Shown here in pieces: positions 6,002-60,227 of a stretch of DNA of 64,000 nt; the first letter of the stretch is position 1, and every line of letters starts with the position of its first letter. The notes beneath the pieces were generated by a model. That model searched no databases and was not told where the DNA came from. It was given only the letters and a program-made list of their open reading frames with translations. The stretch covers positions 2,108,001 through 2,172,000 of the forward strand of contig NW_027271213.1 in NCBI RefSeq assembly GCF_040938485.1, read 5' to 3'. The stretch is from Diadema antillarum (lineage: Eukaryota). The translations under genes and the position numbers were made by a program.

Positions 6002-6926
6002 CTTGGGGTTACAGAAAGAGATACAGATAAAAAGGTCAAAGGTAGGAGCCACCAATAGCAAACTCACCTATTCTTACCTTACAGAAAAAACGAAATCTTC
6101 ATCAATATGACATTTGATCCAAGACCAAATTGTTGTTTGCCTTTTAGGAGTGTTATTATTGTCTTTTTTTTTAATCTCAGAGGAATAACAGTAGGTATTA
6201 TGATGTCACAGAGCAGTTGCATGCCCACTTAGACAAGCAAATAGAGAGGTAGATGTGTAGATAAGTAGTTGATAATCAGAATATTTTGGTAGGGCGACAT
6301 ATTTCTTGTCAATCCTCTCTTTGACAGTGAGCTTCAATAAGGATTACCTCTTTCATTGCATCCTGCATTTTTGTTCTTTTACTTTGTGTCACTGCATGTG
6401 AAACAAGAAGGCTCTTTTAATTTCAACAAACACAAGTCCTTTTTTGTACTTTAGAGGGGAACAAGGTAGTTGCTTTGTTAGAATAGATTTGTTGAACAGG
6501 GGAGAGGGAATGGCTATACTGCAAGGTAGGAAGCAAACCAACCATCTCTTAAAGCACATTATATAATATCTTGTGGGGGATATGATACAATAAACAATTA
6601 TTATGTGCAATTAGCAGCAGCAACAAATTTAACAAGGTACCACACAGAACAGAACTGAACAAAGCCACCAAATACTTCATGCACCAATACACAGGTCAAA
6701 GGTCAAATGAAAGGGCAGGGTCATGCAGTGTGCAGAAAAAAAATGCTCAAAAAATATAAAAGATCATGCTGCTTTATCACAAACATCATCACTTCTGATT
6801 TCTTGCAATGAACTGTACACATGTAAAACATGCAAAGCATCAGCTCTTCTTCTTTGCAATTCCACAGCTCAGATGGACATGGTCTGTTTTGCAACATAGC
6901 CCTTTTGTCAGTCCTACAAAAGATTA

Positions 6927-7019
6927 TTAACCCATTGAGGACGAGTTCAGAGTATAATAGGGCAAGCATCTATGGGAAATGCGTGTTGTAGCAAAATCAA
7001 ACGGTCCTCAACGGGTTAA
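6927..7019. mobile_element. piggyBac-type MITE, copy 1
   Basis: TTAA-CCCATTGAGGAC ... GTCCTCAACGGG-TTAA. TTAA target with CCC/GGG termini is piggyBac-diagnostic. Three copies in the window. Confidence 0.88.
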
Positions 7020-8541
7020 GATCACAATGAGCTTAATACGCATGTGTGGTCAGTATACCGGGAGTAATTGATTTTATCAACTCCAATTAACTAACATCTT
7101 TATAGGCACATTGACAGAATATGTAGTAATTAACGTACAACAAAACAAAGAGTGTGAATGATCTCATATTGTACAGCTGAAATACTACTAGCTTGCAAGA
7201 GACCTGCTGTAGGTTTCTTCATAAAGTTCTCATCTACAGTGTACTACGGGGATTAAACTTAGAGAGAGGCGCAGGACCATTCTACGGCAGGTAACAAAAA
7301 GGAGCTGCAAACAAGACTACATATTGAGACACAGGAAACACAAAACAAAACCAACGACAACAAAAATCCCAGTACATTAGCAACACCGTGAGATTTATGA
7401 TACTACAGTCACCCCCGTGAACATTGAATACAGAACATGTTGAATCGATAAAGACGGAATTACTTTTTCACACACATTATAGACTACAAAAGAATCTCAG
7501 GATGCATTCGAGCACTCTCCTAAAACATGCCATACTGTACCATACCGAGTTAAAAATGGACCACTTCCCGATATCCTAAAAAAGCATACCAGAACTGTAA
7601 CACAAGTTGGCATGCGAAGAATGTGCATTATAACACACACTATGTCATAATTTCAACAGTTGATTCCTTTTGTTTGGAACACCTGTACGTAGTGTAAGCA
7701 CGTTGGGTGTTTGACCCTGTTGCTACAAAAGTGTGACCCCTCTGACTAGTGTCCCAAAATAACTCATAGGGCATTCTTTCTCAACAGAGTGCTTGAATGC
7801 TCCCAATCTGGCATGGTATGGAACAGTACGCATTAGTTTGGATCGGTTCAGTTCACTTTTGAGTGCTCGAATGCAGCCTCGAACTATGGTGTATGCCACT
7901 AAAGACCATTACACAGGTTCAGTGAATGCACACCATCTACACGAATGGAAAGTAACATTGATTCCAGGTTATTAATCTGTCATAAATGACAGCACAAATT
8001 TGATCACATCTAATAGAGGAGCTGTGTGTATGTGTGTGTACGTAGCAATTGTCACGGCTGCGACAAGTGAGGACAGAACTTACGAATACAACAACACGCC
8101 ATAGAGGGCACAGTGGTATTAAATCATGCATTGTACAAACATAAATAGGACAAAAGACTTTGAGACACAGAGTTAACAGATAGAGACAAAAGAGAGAGGG
8201 AGTGGGGCATATTTATAAGACACGTAAGACGAATCCAACCTGGCAGAAAATCCACCATTATTGCGGTATCCAAAGCATGAACACATGTGCAGAATGCAAA
8301 TGTATATTGCATCTGGCATGAACCAGTCGCAATATATATCATGCATTCACATTTGAGCGTGCGCCACAGGGGACTCTGCAGTAATTGTAAATTTGCCGCA
8401 AGGTCGGATTGCTCTATAGCAGAGAAACAACGAGAAGCAGCCGCTTAAAATCAAAGCTCTCTTGGATTATCCACAGCTAGGAGACACAAGTACAGTGTAT
8501 GTGGAAGGCCAAGGTTATCCTATAATGGGTTTGGTACTTAC

Positions 8542-9299: not shown

Positions 9300-9720
9300 A
9301 TCTTCATCACCATCATCATCATCATAATTGTCATCATTTTCATCATCATCATCTTCATCTTCATCATCTTCATCATCATAACTGTCATCATCATCATCAT
9401 CTTTATCTTCATCATCTTCATCATCATTATTGTCATCTTCACCATCATCATCATCACAATCATCATAATTGTCATCTTCATCAACATAATCATCTTCATC
9501 TTCATNNNNNNNNNNNNNNNNNNNNNNNNNNNNNNNNNNNNNNNNNNNNNNNNNNNNNNNNNNNNNNNNNNNNNNNNNNNNNNNNNNNNNNNNNNNNNNN
9601 NNNNNNNNNNNNNNNNNNNNNNNNNNNNNNNNNNNNNNNNNNNNATCATCTTTATTGTTTTTTAACATCATCATCATCTTTTCCATTTTTTTCTTTCATC
9701 ATCTTCATCATCATCATCAT
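9300..9720. repeat. (TCA/TCT)n trinucleotide low-complexity tract containing an assembly gap
   Basis: Degenerate atc/ttc repeats flanking the N run. Confidence 0.95.
9506..9644. other. Assembly gap (139 N)
   Basis: Run of n characters. Confidence 1.
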
Positions 9721-9725
9721 CTTAC

Positions 9726-9863
9726 CGCTGCTGCAGATGGGATATGGATGCTGGAGATAGCGTGGGGTTTTATGTTATTTGATAGGTGACATAGAACCAC
9801 TCCATCCATTAGTGCTTCTGCCAGATCTTCCGGTAATGAGACCTTCAGCCTTGACTCTATGCT
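9726..9863 (-). CDS. LRCH: LRCH exon L, CH domain: SIESRLKVSLPEDLAEALMDGVVLCHLSNNIKPHAISSIHIPSAAA
   Basis: cctgcag acceptor, GCG|gtaag donor, 138 nt. Near-canonical LRCH CH sequence (SIE.RLKVSL..DL..ALMDGVVLCHL). Missed by the ORF track. Confidence 0.97.
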
Positions 9864-9940
9864 CTGCAGGATAAGTGCGACAAAGAAGGCAGCAAATGCC
9901 AGTTTAAGTGTTAAGAGCTAGCTTTCACACAAACACACTA

Positions 9941-53159: not shown

Positions 53160-53380
53160 TACACAGAACGTTGAAAATGAGCCCCCCCCCCCCTACAAAC
53201 TCAACCAATCACTATCAAGTCCATCACTGTTTGAGCGGACCAGGGAGGTGAGCACCTCCCTGAGCGGACCCAAAGGGATAACCAAGACTGTAGGATGTCC
53301 CCCTCTTCTTCTTTCATCCCCCCTCACCCCCTCCCTCCCATGGGAGAAAGGATGAGAAGAGGCGAGAACATTCTACACAC

Positions 53381-53517
53381 CTGAGCTGGAGGATTTGACA
53401 GTGGATTGTGGTCGACCTCGAAGACATCTAGCGAGTCCATCGTCCGGTAGCAGGGCGGGATGTTCTGGATCTTGTTACATGAGATGTCCAGCTTCACCAG
53501 TTTTAACTTGCATATTT
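53381..53517 (-). CDS. LRCH: LRCH exon A, last leucine-rich repeats: (E)ICKLKLVKLDISCNKIQNIPPCYRTMDSLDVFEVDHNPLSNPPAQ
   Basis: Pyrimidine tract ctctcttccag acceptor, CAG|gtgtgt donor, 137 nt. Has the LxxLDxSxNxI consensus and the NPL..PPAQ LRR cap typical of LRCH. Confidence 0.95.
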
Positions 53518-54260
53518 CTGGAAGAGAGAAGGAAGAAGAGGAGAAAATGAACACTGAGAGTGTCAGGGGCAGAAGGACAAAAGAAGATGGCTCACAGCGT
53601 ATAAAAGTAATGTCGAATTCAAATATGGGTCATGATGAAGCAAAATTAATGTGAAAAATCACAAGGTGTCGTCCTGACAACAGGGCACTACAAACCAATT
53701 GCCCACTTGCCAATGGCAACTAAAACTCACTGTTTGGCAAGGAAAATGAATGGGCCATTTCCTGTATAGAAGGGTAGGACCCTTGCCCAAATACATAGTC
53801 AAGAGGGTCAAATTTCTTTAGCAATGTCCTGATGACAATGGAAGATGTCCTACATGTAACAGCCATGATTTGTACATCACTAGCTCGAATAGATTATGGC
53901 TTTCTTTTTTACACTGTGACATAGAATTTTCTTCCTAACATCATGTTACAATCTACACCTCATGGTTACAATTTTGTTTTTTAATTACATGACTCTCAAA
54001 ACCTTTTTGTGCAAGCACACAGCACAAGGGTTACAGGAATAGCTGTGCCAATTGGCATTTCACTTCCTTGCTTCATGTGGGAGCTTGATGAAATCTCTAC
54101 TATGTTCCCACCATAAGAAACTTGAACATTGAAAGTTTTGCTCTTGGATACTTAATTGCTCATGCACAAACAGGCAGTTCAACTGAATTTTTATTCTTTC
54201 CCCATGTGTGAACCTTGTTTGAAAAAGGAAAAAATAAAAGAAGTAGAAACTCTCCCTTTA

Positions 54261-54954: not shown

Positions 54955-57131
54955 CCCAACATCCCTCCCCTCCTGCCCAGAACCGTCTCCCCCCTCCTCC
55001 CCCCCCCCCTCATGCTCAGTCAGCAGCAATCAAGTCCAAGGCTATACATATCTAACTCAAAAGATAGACGAATCACATTTCAAAATGTGTTTTGAAAGGT
55101 GCATGTATACACATGTATGAGCCTGGTTTGAAACGGGTTTCCAGGGATGCCGCGTTATCTATCAAGAATCATTATAGTCGCAACTCAGGCGTCATTACTG
55201 CATATCTGCTTTGTGCCCTTTGACCTAGGAAGTAGTCAACAAAGGTGCGCAACAAACATTCATGTTTGGAAATGGTTGTGCATTTATTTACTTCTCAAAA
55301 AAGGGGTTTGTGGTCCAAACACATTTCAAATCGCCCTTTTATTACTATAGAATTTCAAATTGACATTTCTAACCACGAATGCACATACAATTGTGTTTGA
55401 ATATGCATTGCAGGAACATGCCTCACACACACTTGGAATGGCGATTATGCCTCAATTTTCTAGATAAGTGCACCCAAAGTCATACCCCAGGTAACATTAC
55501 TATGCACTGTCTGTTGTGCAGCTGGTATATCTCCCCACCAATGGTTCAGCTTCTACTTCAATGAATAACATAATTATAGTCGTGGCACGCAAAGATTGTT
55601 GACACATATTTACGCTGATGGCATTTTTCTTTTATGAAATGATTGCCTAATTTTACAGCTGGTACAATGTAGCACTTAGCACTGGCATATCAATACCTTG
55701 TCAACACAGATCTAGGTCAATGCTATTATATTTCTTCTATGACATAATGGTTTAATTTTGTTTGAACAAGTTCCAAATTGTCAACCTTTCATAATTTCAG
55801 TGGGAATGTATTCACTCATTTTGCTATGAGTTCTCATAGCCCAATAATCCACCTTAAAAAAAAAAATTGCTTCCTCCGTAATTCCCCTTTCTTTCCCCTA
55901 TCTCCACTACTATAATGAAACTTCATCAATTCCCTACATCTTTAAAAGTTTCTGAATTATCTCTCTCCAGTTATTACAAGTTAGACAGATCAATGACAAA
56001 CAACTTTCCCAGTGACAGCAAAAAAAGGTTACAAACATATAAAAAGAAACAGATGTATTGATTTGGTAAAATACATTTCACAGACCCTAAAAGAGCATTG
56101 AGATTATTACATTGTGATCCCGATGAAACAGAAACAGACAATGATAAGAATCTGTTCTTTTCATCCCGACATATGATTGATATCACTTACTGTGCCCTAC
56201 ATTCAAGAGAAGTTGCTGCAAGTGTATCCCGATAAACAGTAGCAATGTTCACATCTACACTTTTATAGCATTTTGCATTGTGAGACAGTACTGGAAGTTG
56301 GCTTACAGGTACAAAAAGAAAACAAAAACAAGCATCATAGAAGAAGCAAAAACAGAGAGACACACCAGCACATGAACTCGTGTGTCGTCTTTAAGGTCTG
56401 AGAAATGAAATATCGCTCCATGTAATAAAGGCACTACCCATGCTAAAGTATCTAATAGTGCATGTTTGTAGCACAATTTTCATATCTGCAGTAGAAAGAA
56501 AAGTCAATTGTCAGATGACTACTGTACCCTGTCCTGTGATTTATGGGTTGACAAAAGGAATGTGTGGTTACCCACATTTATTTTACAAATGGAAGCCCAG
56601 ACAAGCAAAATTCGACAAGATAATTATGACCGCCCTTTGGCAAAGTTCATGAAGTGAATGAAATTCATTTTGGTGGCTCTGAATCCTGGGCCAAGATCAT
56701 TCAACTTCAGGAGATTATTATTATCTTTTCTTTTTTTTTTCTTTTTTAAGGAGATGCAGACTTTATCAATGAAGGTTTAGATGGATTATCTACAAGGCAT
56801 TCCCAAACTACCTAGAGTGTACTTTTGTGATGACACTCTTGGCCTATTAAATCCTAGGAGAATTATGCTACAGAAAAGATCTACTTGTCATTATCAAATT
56901 GGCAACTCTGAATTATCAGCATCTCTTACATTGGGCAACTTCTATTAATTCTAGAACTGATTCATTTCCTTAAATCTTTACAGAATCAGAAAGACATATT
57001 TTACGGAAGTTTTGTAACTTTGAGAGAACAGAAAATGAGAACTTTAATTTGTAAGACGTGTTGTCAATTTCAGATTAAAAAATAGATGTACCACATTAAA
57101 AGCATTTGAAAATTCTACAACCACAAAAATC

Positions 57132-58467
57132 AACTAGAAATATCACTTAAGGTGATTAATACCCCCGCCCCGTGACGACAGTCTTACCCAAGGAATGATC
57201 TTTCCTTGATCTTCTGCCATTTAAATGCCGTTACCATGGCAACGCAGCTTCCGACACGTCCGAAAAATATGTCTTGCACATCTTCCCACCAAGACTATTG
57301 TGTGTGCCACATTTCATAAGCTTTTGTCAAAAACTGAGGAAGTAGTTCAATCCACAAGATCTTTCCTTGATCTTCCGCCATTAATATGCCGTTACCATGG
57401 CAACGCAGCTTCCGACACGTCCAAAAAATATGTCTTGCACATCTTCCCACCAAGACCAATGTGTGTGCCACATTTCATGAGCTGCAGTCGAATACAGAGG
57501 AAGTAGTTCAATCCGCAAGATCTTTCCTTGATCTTCTGCCATTTCTATGCCGTTACCATGGCAACGCAGCTTCCGACACGTCCGAAAAATATGTCTTCCA
57601 CATCTTCCCACCAAGATCAAGGTGTGTGCCACATTTCATAAGCTTTGGTCAAAAAACTGAGGAAGTAGTTAAATCCGCAAGATCTTTCCTTGATCTTCTG
57701 CCATTAATATGCCGTTACCATGGCAACGTACTTTCGGGTACTGTCAAAAAATGCGTCTTGCACATCTACAACCAAAGGCACACATCTGTACCAAGTTTCA
57801 TGGAAATTGGGCAAAAACTGAGGAAGTAGTTTGCAACACAAAATTTTCCATCATTTTGGCTCATAATATGTGAGCTGTTACCATGGCAACATACTTTTTG
57901 TCACTGTCAAGAAATGTGTCATGCTGACCTATATCCTAAGACAAACATTCAATATGAATTCCATGAGAATTGGAAGAACACTGATGAAGCAGTTTTGCCA
58001 TGAAGCATTTTGCCCTATATTTTACCAATAACATGCCGTTACCATGGCAACGCACTTTTTGCCACTGCGGAAATATGTGTCTTGCACATTAACATATTCA
58101 GATGAACATCTGTACCTAATTTCATAAAAATTGATCAAAAACTGTGGGAGGAGTTCGCGACGCAAGATTTGTACCCATTTTTGCCCATAATATGCCGTTA
58201 CCATGGCAACGTACTTTTGGGTACTGGCAAAAAATACGTCTTGCACATCTACAACCCAAGGCACACATCTGTGCCAAGTTTTATGGGAATCGGTTGAAAA
58301 CTGAAGAAGTAGTTCGCGACGCAAGATTTGCAACGGACCGACCGCCCGACCGCCCGACCGCCCGACCGACCGACCGACCGCCCGACCGACCGCCCGACCG
58401 CCCGACCGCCCGACCGTCCGCTGATTCCTATATACCCCCTTCAAACTTCGTTTGGCGGGGGTATAAT
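57132..58467 (+). mobile_element. Helentron-associated non-autonomous element (HINE; DINE-1/pearl-CvA-like architecture)
   Basis: 5' subterminal IR atacccccgcc (~57159) matches 3' ggcgggggtat (~58454). Also has seven ~161-bp tandem core repeats, a tetranucleotide microsatellite (ccga/ccgc)n at ~58335-58420, and a 3' hairpin tataccccc...gggggtata. Confidence 0.85.
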
Positions 58468-58578
58468 TATGATATTATGAGCAACAAAGGGCTCAAATGA
58501 GAAAATATTTTTACCATACCTTTTAAAACACTAACAATGTAGAACAATTGTGTCACAATACAAAGACCAAACCATAGA

Positions 58579-58789
58579 TACTGTAAAGCAAGAATGCATA
58601 CAGCATGACATTTTTGCAAATTGGAGCCGACAACCTTTTTTTCATCATGGAATTTTCACGAATTGTCACTGGCATTCGATGCATTATAGTGTAAACAAGA
58701 ATGTTCGCGTGCACTTTAATTTTGCAAATCTTGGCTCTCGCGAAATTTGTGAAATTAAAATGCACGCACACATTTCTCGTTTTACAGTA
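58579..58789. mobile_element. TA-flanked (Tc1/mariner-type) MITE family C
   Basis: tactgtaaa ... tttacagta termini; homologous to the 43956 and 54735 copies. Confidence 0.8.
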
Positions 58790-60227
58790 GGTGGTTTCTT
58801 AGACTGAATGGGTTAAGAAATGTCAATGCCAATAAAAGCTATGTGTTCAAAACATCATTCAAAATGATGATTTAAGACAGAAGGAAGCATTAGACTAGGT
58901 GGTTCTTTAAACATAACACATACAGTATAAACGAATTCCTGCTCGATACATCGTTAAAGTTAGAGGTCACGACCTTGTGACAGGAAGAGGAAGTTGTTGC
59001 CGTCAAATTGCCCACACTGCAGCAAATAATAATCAACAATTCCACAGTTGCCACGATAGAGACAACACGTTGTTTATAATAGTCTCTTGCGAGGACATGG
59101 CTTTAATGAGCCCCAATGTCAATAAACCTTATCATCTATCACCTATTAAATCACGTTATCAGCAGCTAGCAGCATTCCAACTGTGCATATATTACGTTCC
59201 TCCACTCCACATGCAGCTTTGCCTTTCTTCCTGGCTAAGGGAATATATAATTCATTTTTTAAACATGACAGGTAAAAGCAAACTTAGGAAGTTGCTGGAT
59301 AACACTCAATAACTGCCCAACCAGGTGCGTCATCATTTTTCATCTCGCCGAGTCCGACTAAAATTTGATGTCAGAAACAGAAGCATCTTTCCTGGCATTC
59401 AGACATTAATTAGAATCTGCTTCCAGTTTAACTCTTCACTACCAGTGGTTATGTGTTTGTACACACTATCTATGGTAATTTGAGGTGTCGGTTCTGTGTG
59501 GGTTAATTACCAAGCAAGAAAAAATAATAAATGAGCCAGCCTGATGACGAGGCTACGTGAAGCTCTGCCTGAGGACAGAGTACACCTTGAACGAGTTGGG
59601 TTTGCACAGACAGATTTTGACACAAGGGTGTGACTCAGTTGAGATTCAAAACAAAGCTCCATTATCTTACCTTATACTACACTAATGTACACTTCATATG
59701 CGTCTGACTTCAAAAATCAGCACACTTTATTACTGTTGTATGTGTGTGTGTGTATTTGCCTTGTAGTATGGTCCTTCGTTAACTGCTGACATATATACTG
59801 TATGCACTCGCACACCATATTATAATGTTAAATGGAAGCAACTGAGACAACACACACACATACACACTGTACTCAATCTATGCTGTAATTTGTACTGCAT
59901 AATTACTTCAAAACAGCAGTGAAAACACAGCTTGAACATTGGTACACATATTCTTATATTTCAGTATTCATTAGTTATAAAACAATAAATCTGACGAAAT
60001 TTCAGCATCGTCAAATATGTATTGTTCATGTATGAAGTACTAGTAGACTGCTTCTTTGTGTAGTTCAGAAGACAGTGGAAAAAAAAACAAGCACAGAAAT
60101 CCATCAATTTTATCATCATCATTATTCTTGTTATTATTACACTGGTAACCATTATCTTCATCATCATCATCGACATTACCATACCAGTATTATTATCATA
60201 ATATTATCATTAGTAGTCATATAGTGC

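Follow-up and report, generated by a model that had tools for sequence, protein, structure and literature searches.

Why would a mobile element carry seven identical copies of a palindrome that reads like the binding site of a host transcription factor, and has it been kept for the good of the host or of the transposon? The question is raised by a stretch of 64,000 nucleotides from the sea urchin Diadema antillarum (the window, that is, the whole stretch of DNA that was analysed, with positions counted from its first letter), in which a preliminary description made from the letters alone had pointed to a Helentron-type element with one RFX X-box in each of its core repeats.

A non-autonomous Helentron with seven ordered core units

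We compared the copy in the window with 60 copies sampled from the assembly, which were picked for a perfect 5' terminus, whatever the state of their boxes. The comparison places the ends of the element at about 57133 and about 58465, so that the limits drawn in the preliminary description were correct within 1-2 nt. Its features, apart from the boxes themselves, are the following.

57133..58465, minus strand (canonical 5' to 3'): whole non-autonomous Helentron (HINE), subfamily A, with 7 core units, from the 60-copy comparison
58431..58465, minus strand: 5' terminal module, consisting of the subterminal repeat ATACCCCCGCC and an internal complementary repeat, from an inverted-repeat search
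58338..58420: tetranucleotide microsatellite, CCGA/CCGC (ACCG type), of the CCGACCGC type, TRF period 8/20 with 89-93% matches
57197..58329: core array of 7 ordered units, 161/159 bp by TRF
57197..57357: core unit U1
57358..57518: core unit U2
57519..57680: core unit U3
57681..57843: core unit U4
57844..58004: core unit U5
58005..58163: core unit U6
58164..58329: core unit U7
57159..57169, minus strand: 3' subterminal inverted repeat, ATACCCCCGCC on the + strand, shared by the sampled copies
57142..57156, minus strand: 3' hairpin ATCAC-TTAAG-GTGAT, 9 nt from the 3' end, read off the sequence

Similarity among the 60 copies ends at ACTAGAAAT on the left and at GGGGGTATA on the right. On the + strand nearly all copies are bordered by an A (52/54 on the left and 58/60 on the right), which places the insertion between two Ts; read along the canonical strand, a host T adjoins the 5' side in 58/60 copies and the 3' side in 52/54, and the flanks carry no target-site duplication. 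Read along the minus strand, the order is host T, TATACCCCCGCC, the hairpin module, the microsatellite, which lies between the 5' module and the core repeats, units U7 to U1, GGCGGGGGTAT, the 3' hairpin, ...ATTTCTAGT and host T. The two subterminal repeats (ATACCCCCGCC and GGCGGGGGTAT, 11 nt each) are 100% complementary, and the 5' one starts 1-2 nt from the end and forms a 16+16-nt hairpin with its internal partner (58431-58465). Given the T/T insertion, the subterminal repeats, the 3' hairpin, the microsatellite and the ordered core units, the stretch is a non-autonomous Helentron of the HINE/pearl/Tsp type, a class to which DINE-1 of insects also belongs, in agreement with the class first proposed for it. 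Open reading frames inside the element are read-through of the repeats; a Pfam search gave zero families above threshold and an Rfam search of 56500-59000 gave zero RNA families.

The sampled copies are 98-100% identical to the one in the window and have 4, 5, 6 or 7 units, some with extra U7 units. The order U1-U7 recurs in 21/60 of them and U4-U7 in 20/60. Subfamily A combines U1-U7 with the hairpin ATCACTTAAGGTGAT; subfamily B combines U4-U7 with GTCGCTACAGCGAC (GTCGC-TACA-GCGAC), which occupies the position of the subfamily A hairpin and has another sequence with equal self-complementarity, a compensatory variant. Because the diverged units stand in a fixed order in all copies, the array must transpose as a single piece, and the units are therefore old paralogues within a young element.

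The 35-nt 5' terminus has 2,715 matches in the assembly with up to 3 mismatches (reversed control 0) and the box has 22,640 exact matches (reversed control 3), with copy counts inflated up to twofold, as much of the genome is probably present in the 1.75-Gb assembly as two haplotypes. Duplicate loci that are identical or 99.7% identical over more than 26 kb were seen at L042/L044, at L091-L093/L094-L096 and at the RFX and bindin loci; the bindin family, PF02084, is found at two loci (E=3e-60), a match that identifies the genome as a sea urchin's and rules out the bivalve host which the pearl/BIV160-like architecture might have suggested. In the 60 copies, 0.62% of bases at non-CpG positions and 6.5% at CpG positions depart from the consensus.

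Contigs of X1 and X2, both DNA runs of this species, represent both a filled and an alternative allele of the insertion. Filled-junction contigs have zero differences from the window. In the alternative allele 57133 is joined to 58491 with TTAA between them, on a haplotype about 5% diverged; the joint retains the first bases of the right flank (A|TTA), followed by an indel of about 20 nt. Each allele takes up about half of the local depth. The window copy is a heterozygous presence/absence polymorphism, that is, an insertion not yet fixed, and it is a recent insertion of a young, high-copy HINE family.

Adjoining the element, window positions 58620-58790 hold a second very high-copy short repeat whose internal inverted symmetry suggests a MITE; contig depth at 58706-58786 reaches about 140,000 in run X1. 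Elsewhere in the window, 53324-53554 carries a weak, sub-threshold leucine-rich-repeat (LRR) signal on the minus strand.

We found no autonomous Helentron with these termini among the giant Helitron-like ORF copies examined and L061. Helitron_like_N has 146 matches in the assembly, many of them intact frames of 3,381-3,464 aa, and the four copies examined contain neither the termini of the element nor the box. More than 100 copies of this open frame are near-identical and apparently intact (e.g. C37:699254, C160:140169, C138:1575008 and C108:269161, among L091-L102), and its subfamilies have DNA in common that is hardly longer than the ORF, with no X-box and no HINE termini in the copies examined. 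The locus L061 (G000:C7:2219500-2229438) has an identical 35-nt 5' terminus at 9845-9879 and a different body, which includes a SAP-domain ORF about 200 bp inside the end (9309-9686, minus strand) and a YqaJ-like exonuclease ORF (6064-7038, minus strand). We rejected it as the autonomous partner, since it shares the 5' end yet has no Rep/helicase within 8 kb; it may be a case in which this Helentron family captured genes, or else a cargo element of another kind.

The box across units, families and organisms

The seven identical boxes of the preliminary description, one per unit of about 161 bp, were all recovered as exact matches in a motif scan of the window.

57230..57243: X-box-type palindrome GTTACCATGGCAAC in unit 1, exact match
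57391..57404: X-box-type palindrome in unit 2, exact match
57552..57565: X-box-type palindrome in unit 3, exact match
57714..57727: X-box-type palindrome in unit 4, exact match
57877..57890: X-box-type palindrome in unit 5, exact match, in the most diverged unit (51-58% identity to the others)
58038..58051: X-box-type palindrome in unit 6, exact match
58197..58210: X-box-type palindrome in unit 7, exact match

Gaps between consecutive boxes are 161, 161, 162, 163, 161 and 159 bp, and if up to two mismatches are allowed the window holds 21 matches, where shuffles predict 0.56. Seven unit consensuses, one per unit type, were built from 317 genomic monomers and aligned. Their pairwise identity is 51-93%, and 52/167 columns of the alignment are invariant; the longest invariant run, of 14 nt, is the box, the runner-up measures 4 nt, and a run of 14 was reached in 0/200,000 column shuffles. 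The survival of the box even in the most diverged units was borne out; no other invariant run shared by the seven exceeds 4 nt.

Judged by its sequence, the 14-mer is an RFX-type X-box, and the original identification as a canonical site stands to that extent. It consists of two inverted GTTRCY half-sites (GTTACC AT GGCAAC) and its sequence fits this half-site as well as two published RFX consensuses, GTNRCC N0-3 RGYAAC (bioRxiv 10.1101/2022.11.11.515474) and GYTRYYN(1-3)RRHRAC (PMC3414849). The proven C. elegans X-boxes of osm-5 (GTTACTATGGCAAC) and ZK328.7 (GTTACCATGGCAAT) are each one base from it (PMC3245922), as is the Drosophila palindrome GTTGCCATGGCAAC, which is also a frequent variant within the repeats. 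The RFX DNA-binding domain (PF02257) is found at several loci in the assembly, down to E=2.6e-22, and the residues through which RFX touches DNA are nearly invariant across animals and fungi (bioRxiv 10.1101/2022.11.11.515474).

The box also occurs beyond this one family. Among the first 100 exact boxes listed, all but a handful lie in periodic arrays of about 146-163 bp, and several of the listed arrays are families 67-79% similar to U1-U7, with similarity that peaks at the box. These families, with monomers of 146-161 bp, retain GTTRCCATGGCAAC, and the box positions that vary in them are 4 (A/G), 11 (C/T) and the two CpG ends. Three solitary boxes (L069-L071) were seen as well. That at C1:560718 (L069, G000:C1:560200-561300) is exact and stands in non-repetitive, CpG-rich sequence with a CpG observed/expected ratio of 0.83; it looks promoter-like and may be a genuine host X-box. 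Another (L070) has the look of a different repeat.

When metagenome contigs were screened for pairs of boxes separated by 135-162 nt, at least 120 matched. One of them (L106), from another organism, contains a relative that is 68-76% identical and has three exact boxes and a fourth one base off. Most of the matching metagenome contigs listed carry a 155-bp monomer family that is absent from the sea-urchin assembly. Outside the box, similarity of this family to the sea-urchin units was not demonstrable: global alignments score about 3-4.6 SD above shuffles, which destroy the box too. A second candidate block, CCAAATTTnnTGAAnATnGGT, was dropped as a shared feature; it is present in the metagenome contigs and, under the same rule, not in the urchin assembly. 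The setting of the 155-bp family is HINE-like, with arrays of 1-13 units that end in (GTCC)n-type microsatellites and with recurrent flank modules.

Monomers of the 155-bp family were detected with a box-masked profile, and those used to find the contigs were excluded, which left 188, a subset biased against intact boxes and hence conservative. In these monomers the box is the best-kept 14-mer (mean consensus frequency 0.89 vs 0.73 elsewhere and 0.83 for the next-best 14-mer window), with a pairwise identity of 0.80 inside it and 0.65 outside. Its variation is greatest at positions 4 (A/G) and 7. Single box changes fit GTNRCCNNRGYAAC in 47/93 cases vs 0.32 expected (p=1.6e-4), and across RFX consensuses 47-62/93 fit vs 0.32-0.45 expected (p 5e-6 to 2e-4), an enrichment that counts monomers and not independent events and in which the favoured changes are transitions. 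The preliminary description had seen the box stay invariant beside heavily diverged flanks; that it is far better kept than its flanks has now been shown between units, between families and in another organism.

Other tandem repeats with the box or a perfect palindrome were noticed at L177 (metagenome contig Ga0209629_10040966), L139, L183 and L201; one has a unit of about 74 bp with one exact box in each, and one is GC-rich with a short period. X-box-like palindromes in tandem repeats may thus be more widespread than one family. The oyster HINE and satellite sequences examined contain zero CCATGGCAAC or GTTGCCATGG 10-mers, so the box is not universal to the class.

What protein might read the box? 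One possibility is that it is a cis site for the machinery of the Helentron itself, for example for an accessory DNA-binding domain of the Rep/helicase, where repeated internal sites would make transposition more efficient, the effect that subterminal repeats have in other DNA transposons, and the likeness to an RFX site would be coincidental. Two things speak for this: conservation is found in the lineage that transposes rather than in the host, as described below, and a palindrome in the core repeats of the DTC84 element, TTGTCCGGACAA, has been ascribed to transposition-related mechanisms (PMC3879986). The DTC84 palindrome has a different sequence, however, and an element's own recognition sites, the subterminal repeats among them, vary from family to family, whereas this one 14-mer recurs in another organism and in families whose flanks are unrelated and whose termini differ, which favours a host factor. 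A host factor is also favoured by the changes tolerated in the 155-bp family, which follow the degeneracy of RFX. The giant Helitron-like ORF copies examined, moreover, are without the box, and tandem repeats are optional in HINEs (PMC4067079). We therefore consider it unlikely that the box is read by a protein of the element.

Fate of the box after insertion

The preliminary description had preferred to see in the array an RFX enhancer cassette recruited by the host, and had named decay of the box at the rate of its flanks among the outcomes that would refute this. Across copies, the box does decay at the rate of the flanks, an outcome that goes against the cassette. In the 317 monomers of the 60 copies it has 34 non-consensus bases in 4,438 positions (0.77%), and 12 of the 34 changes fall at its two end positions, 1 and 14, where most units have a CpG. 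The remaining 12 positions have 22 changes in 3,804 sites vs 23.7 expected from the non-CpG flanks. At the 5% level, these counts exclude that the box decays at less than about 0.6 of the neutral rate, for a sample that consists of young copies with perfect termini and with which constraint on a minority of copies would be compatible. CpG positions decay about tenfold faster than others, which matches germline-methylated, unprotected DNA, and changes in the box that arose after insertion are compatible with the RFX consensus at the chance rate (8/28). An apparent protection of the CpGs at the edges of the box (4.2% decay vs 6.0% at other CpGs, p=0.04) was discarded, as it is driven by shared subfamily variants elsewhere. 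Since the box decays like the non-CpG flanks and the window copy is heterozygous, there is no sign in the sampled copies of host purifying selection on the box.

Helitron-type elements have spread transcription-factor sites in other animals, and a perfect consensus site in 22,640 exact copies, in a genome where RFX genes are present, might suggest that the arrays are kept by the host as RFX-dependent enhancers which wire nearby genes into the ciliogenesis programme. Neutral decay after insertion and the rapid loss of CpGs argue against such co-option, as do the polymorphism of the window copy and a divergence within the family of about 0.6%, too low an age for widespread co-option, and we regard it as highly improbable. 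A structural or recombinational role, in which the palindrome promotes array formation, unequal exchange or slippage and box-bearing arrays expand (the 'conserved box' idea), would accord with the variable unit number (4-7, with extra U7 units) and with the motifs and palindromes that are common in satellite monomers and linked to junctions in one mollusc satellite (PMC5139131), but it too has very little chance of being correct: the array ends and the truncation point of subfamily B are not at the box, the palindrome, 6+6 around a 2-nt centre and with an A·C mismatch that is conserved, is ill suited to form a hairpin, its likewise conserved asymmetry (GTTACC vs GTTGCC) and a tolerance that resembles the consensus suggest a protein that reads sequence, and the junctions of BIV160/Cg170, whose monomers have two conserved motifs, are without significant link to those motifs (PMC5139131).

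The explanation we prefer is that the box serves the transposon lineage, probably via host RFX, which we hold to have about an even chance of being right; RFX is a candidate named from the sequence of the site. The box would be needed for, or be a strong help to, propagation of the element, and selection would act on the transposing lineage in that only elements with box-bearing repeats keep multiplying. Conservation in the lineage combined with neutral decay of individual copies fits this, the alternative offered in passing by the preliminary description (a palindrome needed by the element itself), better than it fits an enhancer cassette. The factor that reads the box in trans would most likely be host RFX: by sequence the box is a perfect site for an RFX dimer, and one 14-mer across unrelated flanks and termini would follow from the near-invariant specificity of RFX across animals. 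What RFX might contribute is a matter of speculation, for example open chromatin or accessibility of the donor in RFX-active germline cells such as spermatogenic cells, or alternatively a circular intermediate that is retained, tethered or imported. As a by-product the genome might gain potential RFX sites scattered by the tens of thousands, a few of which might be co-opted. The need for the box that this explanation assumes is weakened by the presence of tandem repeats in only some HINE copies, where they are not obligatory for transposition (Thomas and Pritham, PMC4067079).

A broader and more tentative proposal, for which we see a modest chance, is that this rolling-circle class has long depended on a host factor and that RFX-type sites are a propagation need of sequence-unrelated HINEs in different animals. 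If that is true, HINEs would be 'parasites' of RFX sites that also reshape the potential RFX cistrome.

Relation to known elements and X-boxes

Many invertebrates have HINE/pearl/DINE-1 elements among their most abundant repeats. The sea-urchin element has the features common to HINE/DINE-1-like elements, namely TT insertion without duplication, 11-nt subterminal inverted repeats, with 1-2 nt between the 5' one and the end, a palindrome that stops 9 nt short of the 3' end, a microsatellite, optional central tandem repeats and high copy number (PMC4067079). Its 3' subterminal repeat is about 26 nt from the end, in contrast to 38-60 nt in mite HINE families (PMC4067079), and, unlike the class as described in the literature examined, it has a conserved transcription-factor-like box in the core repeats.

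Promoter X-boxes are single, stand about 50-200 bp from the start site and are kept by the host (PMC3245922, PMC3414849, bioRxiv 10.1101/2022.11.11.515474), whereas the boxes of the element are seven in tandem, mobile, present in thousands of copies and not kept after insertion. Identity with bivalve satellites of the BIV160/Cg170 type was considered and rejected: the host is a sea urchin, the oyster monomers examined are without the box, and the resemblance is one of short motifs, judged by eye.

To our knowledge, 'conserved boxes' in satellite-like core repeats have been noted for twenty years with no binding factor named for them. A full-text literature search returned no paper that links such a core-repeat box to RFX or to any named factor. 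If RFX binds the box, the element would clearly exemplify a DNA transposon whose spread requires a host transcription factor, and it would supply tens of thousands of ready sites for a developmental regulator in an animal with ciliated embryos; if RFX does not bind, it is a well-characterised member of a known transposon class.

The nearest parallels in architecture come from bivalves. Pearl of Crassostrea virginica, DTC84 of Donax trunculus and Cg_HINE of Crassostrea gigas have the same module order as the urchin element, with a flank that carries an inverted repeat, a tetranucleotide microsatellite, up to about 7 core repeats of about 160 bp and a second flank (PMC3879986, PMC7492417). DTC84 also shares with it ordered, position-specific repeat variants (PMC3879986), and the core repeats of all three, like the urchin units, each have a short segment of reduced variability. 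That segment is TTGTCCGGACAA in DTC84 and a microsatellite-like motif in CvA, neither of which is an X-box, and the host phylum differs. The Tsp transposons of S. purpuratus (1985), going by how they are cited in PMC4067079 and PMC3879986, are modular elements of the pearl/DINE-1-like class, and on those citations they are the nearest relatives described from echinoderms, with animal group and class both shared. The HINE class and segments of low variability in its core repeats, such as the DTC84 palindrome and the BIV160/Cg170 motifs, were thus already known; to these the present locus adds the alternative (empty) allele, two subfamilies with compensatory hairpins, further urchin families, a family in a second organism whose box varies in an RFX-like way, the negative result in oysters and, for the conserved box, a candidate factor that is directly testable, the box being equal to the consensus site of a deeply conserved host factor.
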